In this document: positions 1,063 to 62,881 of the stretch, piece by piece
How positions within the stretch are numbered: the first letter of the stretch is position 1
Layout of the letters: each line of letters opens with the position of its first letter
Assembly (NCBI GenBank): GCA_002104945.1
Contig: MCFH01000029.1
Location: 186,001-250,000 of the forward strand
DNA: 64,000 bases
Direction of reading: 5' to 3'
Source of the DNA: Piromyces finnis finn
Lineage: Eukaryota > Fungi > Neocallimastigomycota
Notes under the pieces: generated by a model
The model's database searches: none
Seen by the model: only the letters and a program-made list of their open reading frames with translations
What the model was told of the DNA's origin: nothing
Translations under genes and position numbers: made by a program

Positions 1063-4000
1063 ATGAAAGTTACTAAATTAAAGCATAAATTATATATATA
1101 TGTAATAATACTAATATCAGTATGTTTTTGCTTAAAATCTAGTTACAAATGGTATATACTACATAAAACCATCATATATTATAATTAATTAATACTAATA
1201 TATTATATTTAATAGGGAAGGTGATATAATAAATTATCGTCAAGACATTGAGAATATAAAGCAAAATGAAGAATCTTTAAAATACGCAGAACTATCGGAT
1301 TCAAAAATATATTATTTAAGAATTAGAATTATAAATAAAAGTGTAAAGTATTAAGGAAATCCTTACTACATTTTTATACTCGTAATATAAATTATAATAC
1401 CCTTTCGCTCATTTAAAATTTTAATAAATAAATTATAAAGACAGGAAAGATATGTAAATTATGCAATAAACAATTAATGCGTGCAGGAGGAAAGCCAAAT
1501 GTAGTTAATAATTTAAAAAAACCAGATACTCTAAATGGTTTAATGACTTTTGGAAACGTAATTAGAGGAAAATATGAATGGTATTATCCTTTTATCACAA
1601 ATGAAATTGGGATTGATTTTTTAATTATTGAATCAAATGACTTATTACCATATGATCTAGTCAGAGAAGGTGTTGAATCACATTATTTGGCATTAGTTGT
1701 ATATTGGGATATTTATAAAACATTGCGTGTAATCATTTCACTATAATTTATTTAATTATTATTTTAATAATCTAATTATTTTAATATATATCTATATATC
1801 ATATTTAGCTTGTTCAAAAATATGATATTAGTAATTCAGTAATTCAACTAAAAGATTTAGATGTATTACATGTTGATGATATTGAATTCTTTATCAATCA
1901 CAGTTATTCACCATTTGCCTTTGGTATATTAAAAAATTATAAAACGCCTACTGCTTTAATATTATCATTAAATAGAAAAACTCTAGAAGTGGTGGAATTT
2001 GAAAACGAATCTTTAACTCAAGCAACAGAAGGTTTTTTTCTAATAATTCTATACTTACAATTATTTCATAATATTGACATGCTTATTATATATACATTTA
2101 TATAAAAAAAGGGAAGCTTAATGATTACAAATTATTATCTGGGATCTTCGATTCCACTAAAATTATTCTTAATACAACTAATGGACTTTTAATTGGAAAT
2201 TGGAAAGAAGTATAATTACTTAATATATAAATTATTATATATAAATCATATAATTAAATTATAAATTATTTAAATTGAAATTTCCAGAAAAATAATAATA
2301 GTACATTAGCAAATAATTCAGATATATCAGATATTTCATGGGTAAAAGCAAATATAAAAGATATTAAAAAAGTAGAATTTGACACCCAAGAACCACATTT
2401 GGATAAAGACTATTGTAATGTTACATTTATTTTCGATAAAAATCAAAGAATATATGTATTATATGGAGAATTTATTGAACCAGAAGAATTATTAGTAAAA
2501 TAATAATATATATATATTATAAAAAATATAAAATTATTTTTTTCTAATGTAATACCATAAAATAATTAATTATAATATAATAGGATAATAAGAAAAAACC
2601 ACTATATTTATTTTTAAATATTCCACGCGAAAAAATAGATTTAATAAGTGGAACATTAAGTAAAGAGTTTTGTAATAGATATCTATTTTTAATATTTAAT
2701 TATATTAATAATGCTTATGAAATATATGATTATGATTTGATAGTATGTATTTAAATAAATATTAAAAATATAAAGTCTTCTGCTAATACAAAAATAAAAC
2801 ATATATAATATAGAGTTTTGAATGGAGCTTTGTTTTTAGACTTAATAGTATAAATACTAATAAAGAATTACCATATGTTGTAATCAATGATGATTTATCT
2901 GGGAATTTTAAGTTGAAACTTTCAGGAATGACTTTTCAACACACTACTTCAAATGAATTATATCTATATGGTAATGCATTAATTGTAAGGTATATAAAAA
3001 TATAGAAATCAGATTTTAAATATGTAAATATACTTTTTAATATAATAAATAATAAATGTAAAATGATATCTAAGTAATACAAAATCTTTATATCATATAT
3101 TAGTTCAAATGGGGGTTATTCATTTAGTTGCATCGATATATTTAATGAAAAAGAAGATGGAATAATTGATAAATTCAAAACTAATGATGGATCTTATTCA
3201 TTTTCAACAACAATGAATGATGTAACATACAATATTTTAATATTTTAATTTAATTATTCTACATATTTATAAAATATATATACTTTTAATTACTAATAAT
3301 AAAAGGTTTGGTTTGGTAACATAAACTATGGTAGAAGTGTAAAAATTTTAAGTAGAAAGGATTCGGAATATAAAAACTACAGTCATTATTCAGTTAGTCC
3401 GATATATATTGAAAATTCTAAACTAAAAATTATTGAAATTTTTTATAATTCAACAATAAATTTCAAAATTAAAGATATTGATATTCACAACGAGTTGAAT
3501 AAATATGCATTAAAAAATGAGGTAAAATTGCATATAATGTTAAATTATAATCTATAAATTATATAAGCATTATTAAATTTTAAATTCACTTATTCAAAAA
3601 TTGAAATATAAAGTTAATATGTCCATACAAATATATTTCTGTCAATTCTACCAAAGAACCGGAAGTAGTTAGAGTGTAAATATAGTTTTTTTTTTAATAT
3701 TCTGAAATAACTATTATAATACTAATTATATACATAGTATTTTAGAAAATAAGCATTCACAACTTCCACATCACATCTATCTTGAAAAGCATCAATTTTA
3801 TAATTTTACGCTTTCCGTATATTTAGAAGATAATTACAATATTGAAAATTCAAATTTAATGTTTAGTTTAAATAATTTTAATAATATACAATTAAATGTT
3901 AATAAGATTACTGATCGTATTAATAGAAAAATTAATTATGATGTAAAGAAAAATTACTTTATTAAAATATAAGTTAAATAATTTATAATACATTAATAAA

Positions 4001-5156
4001 TTATAATATACATTTTTTTAACAAGGTTTCAATATACGATAAAGGAAACTTGAATTCTCAATATGAACCTGGAAAGAACTTGGAATTGAGTAATCTAATA
4101 ACAACATTTAATGGTTTAAATTATAAGTGCTTAATAAAAGATGATTCAAACAGTTATTCAACTGATATTGAAGTAATTGAATTTTACATTTAATTAGAAT
4201 TTATTATTTAATTATATATTATAATATCTAATTTATTATTTTATTATGCTAATTTTAAAATTTAGAAAGATTTACCTAATTTAGTTATATATTCAGGCTG
4301 TTCACCATTTCAAAATATATCAACGGTTTTTGGACAACAATATTTTAACAATTGCCCTCATAAAAATAATATTCCTTGTGTATTTTTCGAAGATAGTAAT
4401 TTCAATCTATATAATAAAATATCACAATAAATTACTTTATTTAATAAATAATTAATATATATCTTTTTTATTTTATTTTATTTTATTTTTAGCAATTGAT
4501 CCAATATTTCAAATAACAGATCTTGTTACCAATTACACAACAAATTTTACAGGATTCTATACAATAGAAGCAATTGCCGGTGGAACAAAATTAGATAATA
4601 TTAAAGATTTTTCATACAATACTAAACGCATTGTTAATCCTCGTTCAAACGCTAAAAATCTAAAATTAATATGGTCACCTTCTGATGCATATGATAATCC
4701 ATCAATGATGTCTCTTGAAAGAAATCAAATAAGGTATATAAATTTATTATATAATTTAAAAATAATGAAATTTTAGATTATTAATATAGAATATATTAAT
4801 AATTAAATTTTTTTATTTAAATTATTATCATTAGTTTTATATGTGCGAAAGGAAGTCCATGCAAAAAAGTTTTTCCAACAAAATTTTTTGGATCAACAAT
4901 ATATTACATAAAATTTAGAATGTCAACAAATCAAGTTAATCAATATAATTCATATTGTAAATTTGATATTGATTTTATTATTCAATTGTATGGAATACCA
5001 TTAGATTTTACAACTTCTACATATATTCTAGTAATTGGTTTAGGAATATTTATACTGTTTACTATTATTTTAGGACTATATATGGTTCATCAACAGTTTA
5101 AATCTCTCAGAGTCTCTGATAGTTACTCTTTAACTGAAAAATTTAAAGGTGATTAA
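1063..5156 (+). CDS. CATSPERG: Cation channel sperm-associated auxiliary subunit gamma (CatSper-gamma) homologue; multi-exon type I membrane protein of roughly 1000 aa
   Basis: Hand splicing at GT-AG sites gives a signal peptide (MKVTKLKHKLYIYVIILISVCFCLKSS) and N-terminal IYYLRIRIINKS...MRAGGKPNV...KYEWYYPF...IESN. C-terminal exons read VIYSGCSP...QYFNNCPHKNNIPCVFFEDTIDPIFQITDLVTNYTTNFTGFYTIEAIAGGTKLDNIKDFS...LKLIW...ISFICAKGSPC...YYIKFRMSTNQVNQYNSYCKFDIDFIIQLYGIPL, then one TM helix and a short tail. These align collinearly with remembered human CATSPERG (HYFDC...[50 protein letters not shown]...SLIW...IEWLCLENAPC...STYCNYQLTFLLHIHGLPL). Confidence 0.88.
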
Positions 5157-5643: not shown

Positions 5644-6537
5644 GTGGTGTTTAATATGTACCAACAATTAATTTTACCCAAAAACCAACGTCTTCATGGA
5701 AAGTCCAACTTTGACACTTGGAGTCTTTTAATCAAGGCAGCCGCTTTTAGACAGGGTCTAACTAACTACCTTGAACAAGACATTGTTGGAACCATCAAAG
5801 ACAACAGCTTTGAGATAAACCTTAGTCTCAAAGATGACTACAATATGGCTATTAAGAGGATTATTGTCGACGCCGCCTACTACCATCCTAACAGTTGCCT
5901 CGCGTCCATTTATAAAGCCCTCACTAAAACTACGGGAGAGGACATTATTACAAGCAGCAACATTGATAATAATGTTGTAGCCGCCAATAAATTGGCAAAC
6001 TCATCAATTTATAAGGCCGAGATAGTATCAGCAGTTGAAAGGCTAAATGCTGGTGTATGCCTTATGATCATTCAAAATGTGGATGAGAAAATCCTCAGAG
6101 AGATTGGTTGTAATATTAACAGTTACCAAGTATTCAAAAAGTTGTATACAAAATATGGTAATGCTAATGCAGACATCGAATACAGGCAAAAGAAGTTAAG
6201 AAGATTACATACTGAAGATGATGAAGTTGATGATCCAATGAACGTTGATTTTGTTAGCCGAGAAAACAAATCAACAAAGAATAAAAATTACGGTAATAAA
6301 AGAAATATAAACAGAAGCCACCGTACCTACTGTCATATTTGCTGTGAACATGGACACTCCACTAAAATGTGTAAATATAATCAAAAGACCAAGATAGAAA
6401 GAGAACAAAAAAGAAACAATAATAATAAGGCCTATAATCAAAACAAATCCAAAAGAAATTCACAAGGGAAGCAAGTTCACAAGAAAAAACAACAACAAAA
6501 GAAATACAGCCAAGAAGTAAATTTCGATGAAAACTAG
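5644..6537 (+). CDS. Copia-type Gag protein with CCHC zinc knuckle
   Basis: N-terminal LHGKSNFDTWSLLIKAA (Copia gag N-terminal motif), a PMNVD motif, and CHICCEHGHSTKMC = CX2CX4HX4C followed by a basic K/N-rich tail. Confidence 0.88.
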   Translation: MVFNMYQQLILPKNQRLHGKSNFDTWSLLIKAAAFRQGLTNYLEQDIVGTIKDNSFEINLSLKDDYNMAIKRIIVDAAYYHPNSCLASIYKALTKTTGEDIITSSNIDNNVVAANKLANSSIYKAEIVSAVERLNAGVCLMIIQNVDEKILREIGCNINSYQVFKKLYTKYGNANADIEYRQKKLRRLHTEDDEVDDPMNVDFVSRENKSTKNKNYGNKRNINRSHRTYCHICCEHGHSTKMCKYNQKTKIEREQKRNNNNKAYNQNKSKRNSQGKQVHKKKQQQKKYSQEVNFDEN

Positions 6538-9537: not shown

Positions 9538-11378
9538 ATGACTTCTTCGACTTCTAGTTCGAAGGCAATAACACCATCCATTGCAACACCTTCAAATTCA
9601 AATACAAAAAGTAACATAATTTCTTCATCAAAAATTACTGTAGAAAATGTTAATATGAATATGAAAAATTTTTCTAAAAGTAATGGAATTGAAAATAATG
9701 ATTCAAATCAAAATTCTAATTCTAATAATAATAACAATAATAACAATAATAATCACAATATAAAATTAGAAAGCCAAGTTTCTGATAATAATATATCAAA
9801 AATTAAAGAAAATAATAATAACAGTAATAGTCAAACTGGCCTTAGTGGAAACAATACTTCTAATTCTAATAATAATACTAATAATGGAAGTATGAATTCA
9901 TCAATTAATAATTTAAATATTAAAAATGAAAATTCTAATATTAAAAGCGAAAACAGAACTATAGAAAATAATTCAAACAATAATCAAAGTAATATGGATA
10001 ATGGAAATAATAACAATAACAGTAGCAATAATAATGATTCAATAAATAACACCTCATTAAATAATAACAATAATAGTGATGGTAATAATAAAAATAATAA
10101 CAATAACGATAATAATAATGGTATTAACAATAATGAAAATATTAATAATAATGGTAACGGTAATAATAATCAAATACAAAGTATGCCATCAACTCCATCT
10201 ATGACACTACCACCACCATTAAAACCGTCACAAAATAATTTCTCAAACTCTAATCAAGGTATGAGCAGAAGAATGTTACCTCCTCAACAATCTCAATCTC
10301 AACAAAAACCAATACATCATTCTCGTCATAGTCAACCGTCTCCAATTCAACCACCTCAACATACTCCAATTCAACCACATCCTAATAGTAATATAACACC
10401 AATAACACCTCAAAATCAACAAGGTTCATATTTAGGAAACCAGCTTATTCAGTCAAAATATCAATTATCATCACAACAAATTAACAGTTTGAACTTACCA
10501 CTATTAAATGTACCTGTGCCTAACTCAAAATACCTGTCTTTAAAGCATAATAAGTTTGATACAATAAAAAAGGAAATTAATATTTTAGAGGATGTTTATA
10601 ATGAATATATTGATTTAAGAGATCAAATAAATAAATTTTTGTCTGATAAAGTAGAATTACAAAAGAGTTATATTCATTTTTTTGAATTATGTTATCAACT
10701 TAATTTTGAAATTAAAAAACAGAATGATATTATAAGTAATTATCAAAATCTAATTAACAAGATTCGTTCAAAGGTTCCTCAGTCTGAGAATCAATTTATT
10801 CAACAATGTATAGAACAAATTAATAATATTAAGAAAGAGGTAGTTATTTTTAATTATCATTCTAATTTTGAAAATTATTTAGTATGCTAATTTTTTCGAA
10901 ATAATTTTTATATTGGAATGTATGAAAATCTTTAGCCATTACCACCCATGTCAAACCAAGTAAAAATGCAACCAATAATGCCGGCAAAATCAAATCAAAA
11001 TCAATCATTACGTGATATAATGGTAATTATATATTATTATTTATAATTATATATGTATGAAATAAATAAAAAATATAATATGATTAATATAATTTTATAT
11101 TAATGAATACTTTGAATATTATTTTAAAGTCTTCTTCGAGTTCAGCAAATTCATTAAGTTCATTTCAATATGAAAAGCCTCATGGTAAGACTCGTGGTAG
11201 ACCTAAATCTAAACCAGATAAATTAAAAGAAGGTTAGTATATAAATATATATAAGTTTAAACAATTTAATGTTTATTTAATATTTTATATTAACAATAAT
11301 AAAATAATTATAAATGAATAAAATAATTCATTTATATTTATAGGAAATAAACGTATAAAGTTTGAAGATGTAAGTAAC

Positions 11379-14565: not shown

Positions 14566-17565
14566 TTAGTGCCTATAACTACGTGAATATCTTTCTCTGC
14601 TTCTACTTCTGTCTTTATTTTTGTTTCTTTCTCTTTCTCTATCCCTATCTCTTCCTTTTCTTCTATCTTTGTCTCTTATATCTCTACTTCTACTTCTATT
14701 TTTGCTTCTGCTTCTGCTTCTGCTTCTGCTTCTACTTCTACTTCTGCTTCTGCTTCTATTTCTACTTATAGAGCGCCTTTCACTTAAATGCTTATATGAA
14801 CGTCTACTATCTCTTATTCTACTTCTACTTCTACTTCTACTTCTACTTCTACTTCTACTCCTTGACAAAGATTTTCTGTTTTTATCTTTTTCATTTTCAA
14901 TTTTTTTATCATCTTTAGAATTCTTTATATTTTTTTCTTCATCACTTTTTTTACTTATTGTCTTATTGTTGATTTCATTTTTATCCTTTTCTTTATTTTC
15001 TTTTTTTAAATCATTTTCTTTTCTTTTATATTCTTCTTTAATTTCTTTTTTTACCTTTTCATCATCTCTCTTTTTTTCATATTCATCTTTTTCTTTTCTA
15101 TTTCTTGATCTTGATCTACTTCTTGATGGACTATTATAACGTCTATTACGCTCTGTAGAATGGTTAGAATGTCTTTCTCTATTTTTATATTCCTTCTCAC
15201 TGTTTTTTCTTTTTTTGCTATTATTTTTATGATAATCAGATTCATAGTCTGATTCTGAACTTGAATATGAATCTGAACTAGAACCTGTGCTGCTCTCAGA
15301 ATCATAAGAGTCATAAGAATCATATGAATCATAAGAATCATAAGAATCATAGGAACTTGATGAACCAGTAGAAGAATCATAAGAATCATAAGATGAACTT
15401 GAACTTGAGTCAGAATCAGAATCAGAATCTTCTAATTCACGTTTTTGCTGCATAATTAATTTAGGTGCATTTTTAAGATGCTCACGTAATTCATCAGTTA
15501 AACCACCTAAACCAATACTAGTAAAGTAATTGATAGCGAAACGGGTATCTTTTGGATTATCTTTAGGGAAAAGACCATCAAACACACCTCTTGTAACTGT
15601 ACCAGCTGGTGTATTAACTTCAATTACCATGGTTTCATCTTTAAGTCGTTCATTTAATTTCTTTAAACCTAAAGCTTCACTTAATTCTTGGAATAAAATT
15701 TTGATGAAGATACGAGAACTAGAAGTAGTACTACTTTCAGTTAATCGAATTAATGCAAAAACATTCCATGATATCGCATCTGATGCTAATAAATGTGCGA
15801 AGAATTTTGCAATATTTCTAAGATTATTTGTTTCAAAACGATGTATTGTCTTATAATGAGTTTCAAATGATTCCATAAATTTTTCTTGCCATACTTTATT
15901 AATTTTACAAAATCTTTCTCCAAGAAGACCATACATATTAATATAAGTTTTTTCTTGACTACAACATTCAATTATCATTTCACAGAGTTCATTTTCTTGA
16001 CCCTCTTTTATGTCTAATTTCATTAATTTATGAGCACATTCTTCGAAATTAATACTTGACATAATAATTAAGTAAATAGCACGTCTTAAATTAATTGTAT
16101 CTTGATTAGTTCTATCTTGTATTTCCAATTTTTCTTGTGCTTTTTGTAATTCATCTTTAGAATCAGAATCAGATTCAGAATCAGAACTTGATTCATCAGA
16201 ACTTGATTCTGAACCAGAACTTGATTCTGTGTCTGAATCATCACCTGAATCGGAATCAGAATCACCAAGAATTTCTTTTTTAATATCATTATATTTTTCT
16301 TCATTTTCAAGGAAGTCTTTATCAAATTGGAATACATTAAGCATTTCACTTGTTTCTAAGTCATCATTTAATGATAAATAATGTGTAATTTGATCATCCT
16401 CTTCTACTAAATCTAATTCTGAAACAATTGTTGGATTATCTTTATACTTTTCTCTTCTGACTTGGAATAAAACTTCAACCATATATTGAGTTCTTTTATC
16501 AATTTGACCTTCATGAAGAATAGATCTAAATCTTTCAAAAATAGCATTATTAGCTTTTGCACTAACTTCTGCAAGTAAAGCACCACATTCTCTTATAAAT
16601 CCAATTGCAACTTCAACTGAATCATTTGTTGGACGTTCTAATAAAAGTGTTAAAATTTGTAAAGCTATAATTTCGTGAGCAACTCTTTGATTAACTAAAT
16701 GAGCAATAAAATGTGTTGATGATAGACATGCTTGCTTATTGTTTCTACGATAAGCTCTTTTAAATTGAACAATTAAACGAGTTAATAAAAGTTCACCAAT
16801 TTGTGGAAATTTTGTATTAATTACTGCAATCATTGCTGCATAAACGTTTGTAAATGTAGATGATGCTACTTGAGCCTTCATTACGCTACGACAGAGTAAA
16901 CCTCTTCCACGAATTAAATTTTCGCTCAAAAGTTCAGGTATTATATTTTTAATATTTGAAGTATTTACCTTATTAATTAAACCATTAATACTTTTTTTTA
17001 ATGCTTCCCAGCTCATACGTTGATATTCCTCGCTATTCTTATCTTCAATTTGTTCTTGCATTAATCTTAATCTTCCTGGTGGAATATACATTCCACCAGT
17101 TCTTCCTTGCTTTATTGCAATATTTGTTGCTGTTTCTTTATTTTTATCTGGTTTAATATCTATTTGTTTACGAAGTTGATTTTCTCTTTCACGCTTTCTT
17201 TCTGGATCGATATCTATAATCCTTGGAATGTCATTTCTATGTGGTTCTTCCAAAGATTTTGATCTTGAACGATTTCTATAACTATGTCTTTTGTGCTTTT
17301 GAGATGGTGATGGTGATCTTGAATGATGTCTAGAATTGTATTTTCTATGCTTTGGTGATAATGGTTTTGAATCTGAATCTGAATTACTTTCTGTATCATG
17401 ACGTCTTTTTAATTTTTTTGTTTTATTATTATTTGAAGAACTTGCTGAAGAAACAGAGACAGATCTTGATCTTGAATTAGAATCTGTTCTTGTACTTGAA
17501 GTTGATCTTGAAGATGATCTCGATCTTGAACTTGATATAGATCTTGACCTTGATCGTGAACTCAT
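14566..17565 (-). CDS. CWC22: Pre-mRNA splicing factor Cwc22 (MIF4G + MA3 domains, RS-rich termini); single exon
   Basis: [79 protein letters not shown] are canonical Cwc22 motifs. Confidence 0.98.
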
Positions 17566-18056: not shown

Positions 18057-21000
18057 TTACAATTGTTTCTCTTTTTCTACATCAATTTTTTTCTTTCTTA
18101 ATATGATATCTACTAAGTTTCGAACTTTAAAGTATTTTAAATAGTCATTATTGAATACAGTATAATAATCACCAAAATATTTTGAGTAATCCTCTGAATT
18201 TATTAAAAGAGAATATGTTGATTTCATTTTGTTCATTAGTTTTTTATTTATGGTATCACTAGATACATTTATTACTGTTTCAGGATTATTTTTTTCAAGC
18301 AACAATTCATTTGATGAATTATTATTACTATTTTTAACAAATTCTTTATCAATTATGTTGTTATTTTTTGATAAAGGATATATTTTTTGTTGTAAATTTT
18401 CTTTAATTTTTAGATTGGTATACATAAATTTAATAGCCCCCATTTTATAAATTCCATCAAAATAATGAATGTCTTCTGTTATTTGAGAATCAGGGGGCCA
18501 GTTATTTAATCCAATTAAATGACCAATTATAATTGGTATACCAAGACATTGTAATGATAAAACTCTAAATTTTAAATTCCATATTGATGGAATTACATAA
18601 GGGATGTTAAATGTATTTGGGATAAGAAAAGTATATGCAGAACTAAGTAATAGACAAATACATATAAAAACTGTTGTCCATAAAAACGCATATTCTTTCA
18701 TTAAATATACCATTTGAACATTTGAGTATTCTAATTTTTTATTGGAATAAAACATTCTGAAATAAATATATGCTTTCTTCAACAGCGATTTATTTTTAAT
18801 ATAATTTTTTCTTTTTTGACTCCACGATACATAAAGAAGAACAAATAATCTACCAAATATTAATTGTAAAATAATTGATACACAAAGTAATGCAAATAAA
18901 AATTCAGGGATTACTTTTGGGTGATGAAGAACAGTTGAATCTGGTATACCATAACCTTTAATAAAATAATATAAAAAGAAAACAAATAGAGATAATGTAA
19001 ATTGTAGAATAATGATTATTAAAGTATAAAATGCTGCCTTTCGATTACTTTTTACTACATTTTTTAATTCTTCATACCAAATTTCATATTTTGTATTTTT
19101 ATTAACAGATGTTAAAAGACTTAGTGGGAAAGTGAACGTATAACGTTCCATGATCCATATTTGAAAAGTTATTGCAAGTGTAACAAATATTAAGTCTAAG
19201 GTAGCATTTCTAATTATATGAGTATATACATATCTTTTTCTGACTTCTTTATAAATATTAATAACTTTTTGTATTTCTTGGGAGTACATTTCGGATGAAT
19301 ATTCATCATCATCATTTAGTGGATTTCTCTTTAGATATTCTGGATAATCAATAGGTACCATACCCATTGTTTTGAATAAATTAATAACATATAATTGTTT
19401 TTGATATAATAAGTCACGTAAAAGGATTCTAATATATTCCTCAGAATTTTGGATATTGGCTAACCCTTCAATCCATGATGTAATCATTCTTCCTTCACTT
19501 TGAGCAGGTGCAGGATATCCTAACAAACCTGTTACTGTAGCAGCAATATCTAAGTTATTCCATGTATTTTGTGGGAAAAAATCTTTTCCTTTAAATGAGC
19601 CGAAATTTGAATTTTTTTTGTATACCATTATTGGTACCTCCATATTTTGTTTATGTGTACCTCCATGACCTCCTGCATCAACTTGACCATGATCTGATAT
19701 AATAATAACAATAGTATTTTCATCAACAATGTTTAAAATTTCTTTTACATGATTTGCTTTATCTGTACATGCTTTGTAATATGTATTATTTTTATTATAT
19801 TTACGTGTTACTCCGTATGCATGACCTTGAATATCTATATCAGAAAAATGTGTTAAAAAAAGATCAAATTCAATTGCTCCAGTTAATGCTTGTTTTGTTA
19901 TCTTCATACGTTCAAGGTCAGCATAATATGCATTAGTATTACTACCAAGAGGTCCAAATGATGGTGCTACACCGCCATCACCAACTAATTGAGAAAGTTG
20001 ACTTTTAACTAATGCAGGAAATGTTGTAGATCCAGTAATACCACAAAATGTACCATTTTCAGAAATAACTCTCCCGAATATTGAATCAAAAGTAGTTTCT
20101 GGTGCTAGAATATTATTTAAGAGTCCGTGTATTTCCGGTGGAGAACCAGTCATAATTGATAACCAATTTGGTAACGACATAGATGGTAATGAACATTTAA
20201 TCTTATAATATTTAGCATCTTTCATAATGTTTTTATTTGAAATTATTTCTTTAAATTCTGGATGTTCTAGAAATTTGTCGTATCGAAGTCCATCTAATAG
20301 TACAATTTCAACTTTGTTTTTTTTATTGAAAAATTTATTAAACTTTTGTTTATATAAATTTTGAATACGGTTTCTTTCTGCTGTCATACCTCTAGAAACT
20401 GTTTTTGGAAAAAATTCTCCTTGAGTATTCATAATTTTAATAAATTCTAATAAAAAATTACTTAATAAAATAACAACTAGAATAATTACTATAATACTGA
20501 AAAGTTTATGACCTTTGTCAACTCTTTCTTTCATTTGCTTTCTTGCTGATTGAATTTCCAATGTATTATCAATATCCTTAATTATATCAGTCAAAATTTT
20601 TTTTTCTGATTCTGGAGTATTAGATGTATTATTTATCATAATCTTCTTATTATCATTGTCATCATCATCATCATCATCATTGTCATTATCCTCATTATTT
20701 TTTTTAACATTATTGTTATTTTCTTTATCATCATCATCACTTTTTATTTTATTTATAATCGTTTGTTTAACTTTTTTTACATGACTTTTATATTTATTTC
20801 CATTTGAATTATTTATATGATTATTTGTACTAATATCTTCTATTTTTAAAGAAAATGTTCTTGATATTAGATCTAGTATTGGATAACGTACATAATAACC
20901 AAACCGTTTTCTTGATGTTATTACTTTATTGGTTAAATATAATAATGGTATCTATAATTTAATATAAAATAATATTTTATGATTAATTGAAATGAAGGAA

Positions 21001-58559: not shown

Positions 58560-60287
58560 TTTTGGACAATAATGTACATAAAATATATAATAGTTAGACA
58601 GATCAACTTACAGTTTCTGCAGGTAAGCCACTATTATATAAATCTAAATATATTATAAAACATATTTTTTAAATAAGTAAAAAAAAATTTAAAGAGAATT
58701 TTAATAAATGTATATGATTATTTAATGAAGTGGAAAATACCTTTTAACTCGGTTAACATTTTCATAACAAAATTTGATGGTTGAGGTCGATCAATTCTAA
58801 ATTTTAAAGGTGAAAGGTCTGATGATGAATTAGACGTCGAAGTAATAGTTGGAACATATACTTGAGCATGATGACGTCTAGAATAGGATGAGGAAAGTAA
58901 ATTTGATTCATAGGGAGAATAGGAACTATGATATTCTTGTGTTCTTCTTACATTTAGTGAAGAACGATTACTTTTAATATTAATAGGAATCCCTGTATTG
59001 ATATTAAGAGCTGAACAATTATTTTCATGAGAAGTTTTACTTTCATCATAGCTATTACTATTACTTCTATAATTTGAACCTAAAAACCGACCATTAGTAT
59101 TTGTATTAATACCATTAATTCGTTGATAACTACGGTTTTCACTACTCTTAATATGCTTACTATTAATTTCAATACTTGGTATATTATTTATTATATTACT
59201 TCTTTGGCTACTATTTTTTGTCGAGCTACTTGGTTTACTATCATTATCTAAATGATATTTTCTTAACTCTTCCTTTTCAATATCATCAATACTATTTTCA
59301 TTTCCTATCTCTACGGCGGAATCATCTAAAATGCATTCAATTATATGACATTGATAATTATCAACATCAGCAATAATACATGTAGAATGATTAATAGGTT
59401 TACTGAAATAGGAATATCGTATGGAGGCTTCAAGATCTCTTTTTATTCTCTCGATATTAAATCGTGAACATCCCATCAAAGCAAAATCTGATTGATAACC
59501 ATTACTACAATAATCAGCAAGTAAGGAACGACCAAATGATCTATATTGTAACTGATCATTTGGTGTTATTCCATTAGATGATTTTGCGTTGTGTTGATTT
59601 ATTGAAGGGGAAGAAGATAACAACGAATTATGACCTTTGTCATAATAACTCATTGGGGAAACTGATAATGATGGAGATGATGAAGATTGCGAAAAAGATG
59701 GAGAAAATGAATGAACAGGTGAAGACGCAGGTGATGGATTGATTTGACTATTTTGTGAATTAAGTTTTGGTATATATTGTAAATGATTATTTATTTGAAA
59801 TTCTTGTACCACTGGAGATACTAAATGAATATCATTTGCTGATAAATGTTTCATTCTATTTGTATATGAAGAATCATAAGGCTGTGAAAAAGAATTTGTA
59901 GAATCATTTAAAGATAAAATATATGATTTTTTATTTTGATTTGAATTTATTGGTATATTTACAGATTCTGATGAATGTTGTGGTATAGGTATTGAAGTAG
60001 GATTGTATCTAAGATATTCATCAGCAAAACAATCAGGAACTGTACGGGTAATTAAAGTTCTAAAATATGTAGAATAGAATTAAATTAGTGTTGTTATTTA
60101 TTGATAATTTAATAATAACTACTAAAAGTAAGCATTATATCACAAAAATGAAATATAAATACTATTATTATTATCATTATTATTATTATTATTATTATTA
60201 CTAATAATACAAAAAATTAAATTATAATAAACAATATAAGCAAATAATAAAAATTTATTCTTAAAAACACTCTTGAATGAAAAATAT

Positions 60288-60359
<72 letters not shown>

Positions 60360-62881
60360 TAAATAGTATTTGAAATATATATCAATTATAAATACTTTGG
60401 AATTGGAACTGAAACTAATTCTTTTGTTAAATTTTTTTTAGCTTCATTTTCTGCTAATTTTGATAAATTAACATCTGAAGATAGAATAATTTTTTCTGTT
60501 AGCATTGAATGTTTTACAGTATTATTGGTATTTTGGTAATCTATAGATGTTGTTAATCCAATATTATTTGTCTGTTCAGATGGATCGGTATCATTATTCA
60601 CTATTTTTTCATCATCTTCTTTTATTTTAACGTTATTATTCATAATGTCTTCCATTGGAACATTATTCACATTATCACTTATATTAACATTCATACTTAA
60701 AGTACTATTTCTATTACTCTTACAAATAGCATCTGGTTCTGTAAACATTTTAATTTTCGTATCTGCTTGATCTGCTTGATTTAAAGATAATGCTGAATTA
60801 GAAAATGTTGATAATAAACTATCACTGCGAATAGAACTGCAATAGCTTTCCTGTCTATTTAAGTTTTGAATATATTCTATATGCTCATGAAGTTCACTAC
60901 AACGAATAAAATAAGTTAAAATATACAATATTTTTTGAACTAAGTGTTTATCTTGATTGCCTATAATAATAGTTCTGGATATTTTTTTTGTACCTAAATT
61001 GCCATATAAATTACTTAATTGATCTAAATATGGATTTAATTGCTTATAATTTTTAGTTTTATTTTTTGATTCATCATACATTGATGAGGCAACAGTCGTA
61101 ACCCATGAGATATGATAAGCAAAAACAGAAGTTAAAACTTTTGATAAAAAGAAACCTGTTTTTTTAATATCTAATTTATTAATCAATCGACAAAATTCTG
61201 ATACTAATATATTACAACATTGTTTTTTCTCTCCTGGGAAAGTCATCATTGTTAACCATAAAGGCTTCTGAATTCTTGGGGAACAATATAATTCACATAT
61301 TGCATTTTGAAATTTTTCAACAGCTGCTAAAAATTCTGTATTTTTTTGAATTGCATATGGTGGTAGCATTGGCATTTGAGGATCTTCAATATCATCTTGG
61401 CTAGATTTATTCTATAAAGTTTTCAAATAATTATTATTTATATTAATAACAATTAAAATTGATATATATTTTATTTTTTTTATTTATTTCTATTTTTATT
61501 TTTGAATATGAAATTAATATAATAAAAATATTATTATAATACAAAAGTCTTTTGAAAATTTATATTTCAATATCATTTATATTTTACTTACGTTATCATT
61601 TGATTTTGTTGAGCTTTTTCGATACGTCGAGCATATTGTATCAACTAATGTTTCATATAAGATCTGAATATGATTTTCTAAAATAATAAAATGAGTAAAG
61701 AAAAATTCACGAAATACTGGTTCTAAATCAGTATCAATTACTACACCAATAGCATATAATATTCTTCTTCTTTTAGATCTCCTTATTGCCTGAGTATTAT
61801 TTTGGAAATCTGCTTCTGATGATATTGAATCAATAGATTTATCTGTATTTGATGAGGTAGCTGATTTTAAATTTTCCATAGTAAAACTTGTAGTAAATCG
61901 TTTAGCACGACGTTGAGATAAATTAATTGTGCTGGATGACTTTCCTGAATTAAATGATGCAGAAGGAGAAGAAGGTTGAGAAGATAAATTATTATTTGAT
62001 ATAGATATTTCATGTTGTTGTTGGTTACTGTTTACAGATAAATCAGCATTATAATAATTCTTTCCTATAATTGGAGGATTAAATTCATAATCTTTTTGTT
62101 GAAGGTATCTTAATGATCCATATGACATAGAATACTCAGACGCTGACTTATTTAATGTTGAATCATTTTTTATTAACGATACTTCCTCATCAAAAGCACT
62201 TATACTAAATAATTTTGTCCATACAATCTGTGGTTGAGGTATTTTTAATAAATGAACCTTTGTTATAACACCTTTATATGCAATTGGTGCTGTTCCGAAC
62301 ATTATCTCACCTAATAATTCAAAATTATGATTACTCTGTGATATAGTTGTCATTTAACAAAATATTACTAAACATAGATAAAATTAATTAAAAAACATTA
62401 ATATATTCTATTAAAAAAAACTTACTCTTTTTTTATAAACAGGTGTATGTTCCCCATTAAAATCATTTGAAGTCCAACTCTGAGAATGTTTACTATTACC
62501 ATAATGTGAATATCGTCTTGGAGTTTTATGGATTAAAGAAAGTGAGCCGGGTTTTGAATAAGAATGTTTATCAGAAGAAGATAATGAAGAGGAAGAAGAA
62601 GAAGTTTTCGAATGTGAAGATTTATAAGGAATCTTCGTATCAAATAATGGTAATTTTAATTTGTCACCAGTGTCTTGAAAAACAATTACACGTATTTTAT
62701 CCACTGAAAAGGAGTGTGGACTATTAACATTAAAAAATATTAATACATATATTATATATATCTAATATATATTTATAAATTTATAAATTATTAATATTAT
62801 TAATATTATGAATTACCTGGTTTTATTATTATTGTTTTTGCCATTAGCTGACTGATTAAAACTGAAAAAACGACTAAACAT
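58030..62881 (-). CDS. FNIP: Folliculin-interacting protein (FNIP1/2; Lst4 orthologue); multi-exon
   Basis: IRVIVFQD...LFD, LLGEIMFG..PIAYKG..TKVH (FNIP_N); FFFTHF..LENH, LYCSPRIQKPLWLTM, FLSKVLTSV...HISWVTTV, L.NLYGNLG, LYILTYFIRCSELHE (FNIP_M); SLLADYC...DFALMG, CIIADVDN, PSNFV..ML (FNIP_C). ATG at 62881 reads MFSRFFS. Confidence 0.92.

Follow-up and report, generated by a model that had tools for sequence, protein, structure and literature searches.

An expressed CATSPERG-like gene in the anaerobic gut fungus Piromyces finnis, encoding a proposed canopy subunit of a zoospore flagellar CatSper channel

We analysed a stretch of 64,000 nucleotides (hereafter, the window) from the genome of the anaerobic gut fungus Piromyces finnis (contig MCFH01000029.1, positions 186,001 to 250,000 of the forward strand). 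Positions 1063-5156 of its plus strand hold a 16-exon gene related to CATSPERG, auxiliary subunit gamma of CatSper, the flagellar Ca2+ channel. The gene is expressed, correctly spliced and under purifying selection, and its product is a type I glycoprotein-like membrane protein. We consider it likely that this protein is the P. finnis orthologue of CATSPERG and that it acts, as we propose here, as a canopy subunit of a CatSper channel in the zoospore flagellum.

Results

The gene is spliced from 16 exons and transcribed

Translated in three frames, positions 1063-5156 of the plus strand resolve into 16 stop-free pieces, which join across 15 GT..AG introns of 62-114 nucleotides each into a reading frame of 2,808 nucleotides (935 codons, from an ATG start to a TAA stop; Table 1). 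The predicted 935-residue product is identical, residue for residue, to GenBank entry ORX47838.1. The gene has ~24% G+C in a window of ~18% and is native-like in its composition. A preliminary description, made from the sequence alone, had proposed that many short GT-AG introns hide one long gene at this position. The 16-exon model, the RNA contigs discussed below and the identity with ORX47838.1 all uphold that proposal; the product size that it gave, ~1000 residues, has to be lowered to 935.

Transcript evidence came from Logan contigs of four RNA runs, belonging to three studies of the same organism, which were placed on 2543-4440. These contigs skip exactly 2743-2813, 2990-3103, 3222-3305, 3522-3613, 3676-3737, 3943-4025 and 4173-4265, corresponding to introns 7-13; where the donor site had been ambiguous, at introns 8 and 11, their joints decide for the model. 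Overhanging contig ends carry the last part of exon 6 and the beginning of exon 15, in agreement with the junctions of introns 6 and 14, and one RNA contig of 2,943 nucleotides fits the entire coding sequence together with short untranslated regions. Moreover, three full-length orthologous cDNAs (L005, L006 and L007) are collinear with the model and free of gaps over all 15 junctions; for introns 1-5 and 15, support consists of these cDNAs and the identical public model. Transcripts of the gene were present in the four culture RNA runs, and transcripts of orthologues in metatranscriptomes. An RNA-based gene model had been suggested in the preliminary description as a check on its reading, and here the junctions agree and the frame is kept through splicing.

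Two kinds of variation were seen among the transcripts. One RNA run differs from the window by A>G at 2918 (synonymous, K) and by A>G at 3456 (I>V), and the same run carries a T>C change in exon 6 that turns F into S; these differences look like strain variation within one species label. Separately, the metatranscriptome contig L001 retains an intron (its positions 510-588) that corresponds in position to intron 7 of P. finnis, with exons 8-16 spliced. The sequence of L001 is also present, fully spliced, in L005.

Sequence comparison places the product closest to the gamma subunit

On the whole protein, the Pfam model CATSPERG_C (PF22846) matched residues 731-907 with 93.3 bits (E-value 2.4e-26; cut-off 27.6 bits), and exons 15 and 16 taken singly each exceeded the same cut-off, at 30.8 and 42.3 bits. 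The preliminary description had pointed to this kind of comparison with hidden Markov models of the CatSper auxiliary families, and the paralogous models scored lower: exon 16 gave 42 bits with CATSPERG_C versus 15.7 with CATSPERD-E_C and 11.6 with CATSPERB_C. The model for the immunoglobulin-like (Ig-like) domain, CATSPERG_Ig-like (PF22851), reached 22.5 bits on the whole protein, below its cut-off of 27, and was likewise sub-threshold on exon 12 alone. In profile-profile comparison, the Ig-like region matched residues 761-892 of turtle CATSPERG with 98.3% probability (E-value 1.5e-14). A phmmer search of the PDB returned as sole matches the mouse CATSPERG2 chains 7eeb_F and 9ubw_F (E-value 1.6e-20), aligned from the Ig-like domain through the transmembrane helix. 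Single exons used as queries likewise matched these two chains alone in the PDB. The animal matches bear the name 'auxiliary subunit gamma'.

Since the Pfam models for the beta-propeller and N-terminal domain of CATSPERG were silent, we built a profile from the P. finnis protein and non-animal homologues and aligned its segments one at a time to turtle CATSPERG with hhalign. The C-terminal domain matched with an E-value of 5e-27, residues 200-590 matched the turtle beta-propeller (266-666) with an E-value of 4e-7, and residues 30-590, with the N-terminal domain included, matched with an E-value of 2e-9. All of the significant segment matches were collinear. Taken together, the Pfam, PDB, profile and structure matches agree with the full-length CATSPERG homology claimed in the preliminary description, and the Pfam scores, the PDB sequence search and the Foldseek ranking discussed below all single out gamma, over its paralogues beta, delta and epsilon, as the subunit nearest to the protein.

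The predicted topology and fold resemble those of a CatSper canopy subunit

The N-terminus of the protein is basic and then hydrophobic, resembling a signal peptide, and a single strongly hydrophobic stretch lies near the C-terminus (residues ~887-911), followed by 24 residues. Hydropathy peaks are confined to residues 6-28 and 885-915, and the AlphaFold model places helices at residues 6-21 and 887-920. Based on these analyses, we predict a type I topology with a signal-peptide-like N-terminus, a large ectodomain, one C-terminal transmembrane helix and a short tail; the preliminary description had likewise supposed a type I membrane protein. The product contains 14 N-x-S/T sequons and 15 cysteines.

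From the N-terminus onward, the domain order is an N-terminal beta-rich domain, a beta-propeller (residues ~176-560), an Ig-like domain (residues ~596-695), a cysteine-knotted C-terminal 'stem' (residues ~731-885), the transmembrane helix and the short tail. The C-terminal motifs GC.P, PC, P.F.I.DLVT, GG, LIW, C..GSPC, YC and G.PL, followed by the transmembrane helix, all align to the family consensus. The motif set of the C-terminal domain (GC.P, C, PC, GG, W, C..GSPC, YC and GLP.D) is present as well, such that every C-terminal motif on which the resemblance to CATSPERG was first proposed was found in place. Residues C717, C735, C743, C832, C838 and C870 stand in alignment columns that hardly vary among fungi, protists and animals.

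An AlphaFold2 model of the P. finnis protein had a predicted local distance difference test score (pLDDT) of 78 and a predicted template modelling score (pTM) of 0.70. Comparison of an AlphaFold model with the CatSpermasome structure had been named as a further check, and the gamma chain, 7eeb_F, was the best Foldseek match (E-value 5e-40, TM-scores 0.63/0.57). Three other large CatSpermasome chains came next, with E-values of 1e-26 to 1e-19, and unrelated propellers appeared only from an E-value of 1e-10, beyond a gap of over 9 orders of magnitude. VIA-align superposed model residues 57-891 on residues 69-1062 of 7eeb_F with a Z score of 28.5 over 676 residues, and this superposition takes in the Ig-like region. 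The predicted propeller also superposes on WD40 propellers, and in VIA-align these generic propellers gave Z scores of 19.7 or below over about 295 residues. These findings suggest that the protein, as modelled, has the full architecture of a canopy subunit.

Mouse CATSPERG2 (7EEB chain F; 9UBW chain F) shares with the P. finnis protein its domain order, type I topology, C-terminal motifs, six cysteines and the alignment of the transmembrane segment. In contrast, overall identity is about 14-16%, the mouse protein is longer (1145 versus 935 residues), and the animal-trained Pfam models for the N-terminal domain and propeller miss the fungal protein. CATSPERB, CATSPERD and CATSPERE, the other large chains of 7EEB and 9UBW, likewise combine a beta-propeller, an Ig-like domain, a stem and a transmembrane helix and rank second to fifth among the structural matches, whereas sequence models clearly separate them from the P. 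finnis protein and phmmer finds gamma alone in the PDB.

The gene is conserved among anaerobic fungi and groups with those of other zoosporic fungi

A metagenome scan with a four-row alignment recovered L001, a mostly spliced transcript that is 77% identical in exon 16, and its open reading frame of 537 residues was used as the query for orthologue retrieval. A metagenome scan with exact P. finnis peptides gave no match. Exon 16 had no match above 42% identity in a 50%-representative protein library, which is not evidence of absence, since four anaerobic-fungus orthologues are contained in the underlying collection. The anaerobic-fungus orthologues include OUM69238.1 of Piromyces sp. E2, KAG4107671.1 of Neocallimastix lanati, a model of N. 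californiae that is split into ORY66853.1 and ORY66854.1, a partial Pecoramyces model and metatranscriptome proteins.

Against the three full-length cDNAs, the ratio of nonsynonymous to synonymous substitution rates (dN/dS) was about 0.16 overall. The Ig-like and C-terminal domains gave the lowest values (0.07-0.15; 0.09-0.14 in the C-terminal domain, and 0.09-0.16 in the stem domain and transmembrane helix), and the N-terminal 200 residues gave the highest (0.15-0.28). All 15 cysteines (15/15) are conserved among the anaerobic-fungus orthologues. The purifying selection that the preliminary description had surmised from intact frames and cysteines is therefore borne out by both measures.

In a maximum-likelihood tree, the anaerobic-fungus sequences formed a clade with 100/100 support inside a fungal clade (89/94), adjoining Cladochytrium and other chytrids, with the Blastocladiomycota as sister group. 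The branch leading to the anaerobic fungi is long, at 2.0 changes per site, and the composition of this clade is AT-driven and extreme. With Cladochytrium KAI8808239.1, the P. finnis protein aligned over residues 303-921 (E-value 5e-66, 215 bits), as against 68 bits with turtle CATSPERG. The homologues of other zoosporic fungi (Cladochytrium KAI8808239.1, Sorochytrium, Catenaria ORZ33193.1, Paraphysoderma and Allomyces) belong to the same family, share its architecture and fall into one fungal clade, and the AlphaFold model of the Cladochytrium homologue is also best matched by 7eeb_F. P. finnis differs from these fungi in that it is obligately anaerobic, its zoospores are uni- or polyflagellate, and it belongs to the long-branched, AT-driven clade. 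More distant CATSPERG_C proteins were found in Pigoraptor, Chromosphaera, Cyanophora and Tritrichomonas. Those of the glaucophyte Cyanophora paradoxa and the parabasalid Tritrichomonas foetus are full-length and have weak Ig-like matches.

Discussion

In mouse, the CatSper1-4 pore lies directly beneath an extracellular canopy, a heterotetramer of the beta, gamma, delta and epsilon subunits, in which gamma touches beta and epsilon and adds inter-dimer contacts (PMC13484710). Loss of a canopy subunit destabilises the pore, no Catsperg knockout is reported, and CatSper is considered the most complex ion channel known (PMC13484710). By analogy, P. finnis gamma would reside in the flagellar membrane of the zoospore as one of four large single-pass canopy proteins (beta, gamma, delta and epsilon), and this canopy would roof the tetrameric pore of CatSper1-4 and be needed for pore assembly and stability. 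Entry of Ca2+ through such a channel may then alter the waveform of the flagellum as zoospores steer or perform chemotaxis. On the strength of this analogy, a CatSper complex that steers zoospores is plausible. We lean slightly towards the broader view that anaerobic gut fungi keep a near-complete, working CatSper (pore subunits 1-4, a beta/gamma/delta-epsilon canopy and cytosolic sensors) and that their zoospores steer with it to plant-derived cues in the rumen.

Several observations weigh against assigning the protein to such a channel. The Pfam models for the CATSPERG beta-propeller (PF15064) and N-terminal domain (PF22840) give no match on the whole protein, and residues 1-200 alone are not significantly similar to turtle CATSPERG in hhalign (E-value 0.035-0.19). 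The preliminary description had also seen similarity at the N-terminus, in the motifs YYL.I, G.KP.V and WY.P; these do match up with turtle CATSPERG when the profiles are aligned globally, but the segment that holds them falls short of significance when compared by itself. The fold does not discriminate among the canopy paralogues either, with VIA-align giving a second CatSpermasome chain, 9ubw_E, a Z score of 27.4, nearly equal to that of 7eeb_F, and the assignment to gamma is therefore made from the sequence. Finally, a flagellar site, zoospore-specific expression and association with a pore are predictions of the proposal.

One alternative is that the protein, though its ectodomain is of the CATSPERG family, functions with no CatSper pore, for instance as an adhesion or receptor glycoprotein of the flagellum or cell surface, such that its name reflects ancestry only. 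Receptors of the integrin-alpha and sortilin types do resemble the combination of propeller, Ig-like domain, stalk and transmembrane helix, with lower scores, and flagellates as distant as Tritrichomonas and Cyanophora also have proteins with CATSPERG_C. However, gamma is an obligate canopy subunit in mouse, the only system studied (PMC13484710), and the stem and transmembrane helix, through which mouse gamma contacts the channel, are the most conserved part of the fungal protein, with the low dN/dS values given above. We therefore regard a poreless role as unlikely, though it is the strongest of the alternatives to a canopy subunit.

A second possibility, which we consider highly improbable, is that the gene was gained by horizontal transfer from the animal host or another eukaryote of the gut. 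The herbivore-gut habitat would offer the opportunity, and among the works cited in PMC13358043 are reports of extensive horizontal gene transfer in anaerobic gut fungi. Nevertheless, the closest full-length relatives are chytrids and blastoclads (215 bits for Cladochytrium versus 68 for turtle), the anaerobic fungi fall inside the well-supported fungal clade, and the gene has a native G+C content of ~24% and 15 short introns of fungal type. Moreover, the CATSPERG tree mirrors the species tree, which argues against transfer from an animal host; we conclude that the gene was inherited vertically within the zoosporic fungi. That the gene is instead a decaying relic, or an artefact of open frames stitched together by hand in very AT-rich sequence where stop-free stretches call for care, is refuted by spliced transcripts with exact junctions, the identical and independent public annotation ORX47838.1, intact full-length orthologous cDNAs, a dN/dS of 0.16 and a confident AlphaFold model, and deserves practically no weight.

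Both the gene and its family assignment are already public, in GenBank, in UniProt and in an orthogroup table of 2026, and the present work is a confirmation rather than a discovery. UniProt names ORX47838.1 'CATSPERG C-terminal domain-containing protein'. The CATSPERG column of the sheet 'homologs_in_fungi_accesions' in PMC13358043 (Sci Rep, May 2026) includes ORX47838 among its entries, along with KAG4107671, ORY66853, ORY40518, ORX85720, OUM69238 and proteins of blastoclads and Gonapodya. The same study reports that fungi have homologues of CATSPER1-4, B, D/E, T, EFCAB9 and TMEM249, and states that retention of CatSper components is not universal among flagellated fungi. In Allomyces, CatSper genes including B, G and D have been reported, with CATSPERB, CATSPERG and CATSPERD expressed during the sexual stage (bioRxiv 10.1101/230292). 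The novelty implied by the preliminary description was thus overstated, the protein being annotated, named and listed beforehand; it was right that experimental characterisation is absent from the searchable literature, where our searches turned up no paper on CatSper function in anaerobic fungi, whether as discussion or as experiment.

What the present analysis adds is confirmation and a clean description at the level of domains. Non-animal orthologues such as this one show that the extracellular CatSper canopy is ancient, and they could help to tell its core role in assembly from sperm-specific additions. If a conserved CatSper set is indeed present in gut fungi, it would provide a molecular handle on zoospore motility and chemotaxis, which govern the colonisation of plant fibre, and if a working CatSper has been retained, Piromyces or Neocallimastix would offer a culturable non-animal system for CatSper physiology.

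Table 1. Coordinates of the CATSPERG-like gene, its exons and its transmembrane segment in the window (residue numbers refer to the 935-residue product)
Feature	Position	Strand	Remark
Whole coding span, CATSPERG orthologue (likely), 16 exons, 935 residues	1063..5156	+	Model identical to ORX47838.1
Exon 1, residues 1-30: start codon, signal-peptide-like hydrophobic segment (residues ~6-25)	1063..1151	+	
Exon 2, residues 30-72: N-terminal domain	1216..1342	+	
Exon 3, residues 73-168: N-terminal domain	1441..1728	+	
Exon 4, residues 169-243: beta-propeller region begins at about residue 176	1809..2031	+	
Exon 5, residues 243-275: beta-propeller	2112..2209	+	
Exon 6, residues 276-344: beta-propeller; 3' junction backed by loose ends of RNA contigs	2288..2494	+	
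Exon 7, residues 345-397: beta-propeller	2584..2742	+	
Exon 8, residues 398-456: beta-propeller	2814..2989	+	
Exon 9, residues 456-495: beta-propeller	3104..3221	+	
Exon 10, residues 496-567: end of beta-propeller	3306..3521	+	
Exon 11, residues 568-588: linker with conserved Cys570	3614..3675	+	
Exon 12, residues 588-656: CATSPERG Ig-like domain, first half	3738..3942	+	
Exon 13, residues 657-705: Ig-like domain, second half	4026..4172	+	
Exon 14, residues 706-749: start of CATSPERG C-terminal domain (GC.P ... C ... PC)	4266..4395	+	
Exon 15, residues 749-829: CATSPERG_C domain (P.F.I.DLVT ... GG ... LIW)	4493..4733	+	
Exon 16, residues 829-935 and stop: end of CATSPERG_C (C..GSPC, YC, G.PLDF), transmembrane helix, predicted cytoplasmic tail of 24 residues	4835..5156	+	
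Single predicted transmembrane helix, residues ~887-911, in exon 16	5007..5081	+	Hydropathy, AlphaFold helix 887-920, alignment to mouse CATSPERG2 transmembrane segment

Other features of the window

Upstream of the CATSPERG-like gene, an open reading frame of 61 residues on the minus strand (48-233) has the look of exon 1 of a conserved, divergently transcribed gene, and its product may resemble the N-terminus of the nucleolar GTP-binding protein NOG1. The intergenic interval between this exon and the CATSPERG start contains an unbroken poly(A) tract of about 57 nucleotides (430-486). Directly downstream of the CATSPERG-like gene, positions 5644-6537 of the plus strand encode a protein of 297 residues that looks gag-like, with a lysine/asparagine-rich tail and a zinc-knuckle motif (C..C....H....C); this open reading frame has no Pfam match and is probably part of a retroelement.

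Further along the window, Pfam matches identify a protein with a Groucho/TLE N-terminal domain (9538-10890, plus strand), an MA3-domain protein (14566-17565, minus strand), a Sel1/TPR repeat protein (38264-40606, minus strand) and a folliculin-interacting protein with FNIP_M and FNIP_C domains (58718-61375, minus strand). An open reading frame of 859 residues with Phosphodiest/Metalloenzyme domains (18057-20639, minus strand) is 100% identical to P. finnis BCR36DRAFT_84894 (995 residues), and its next-best matches are from other Neocallimastigomycota.

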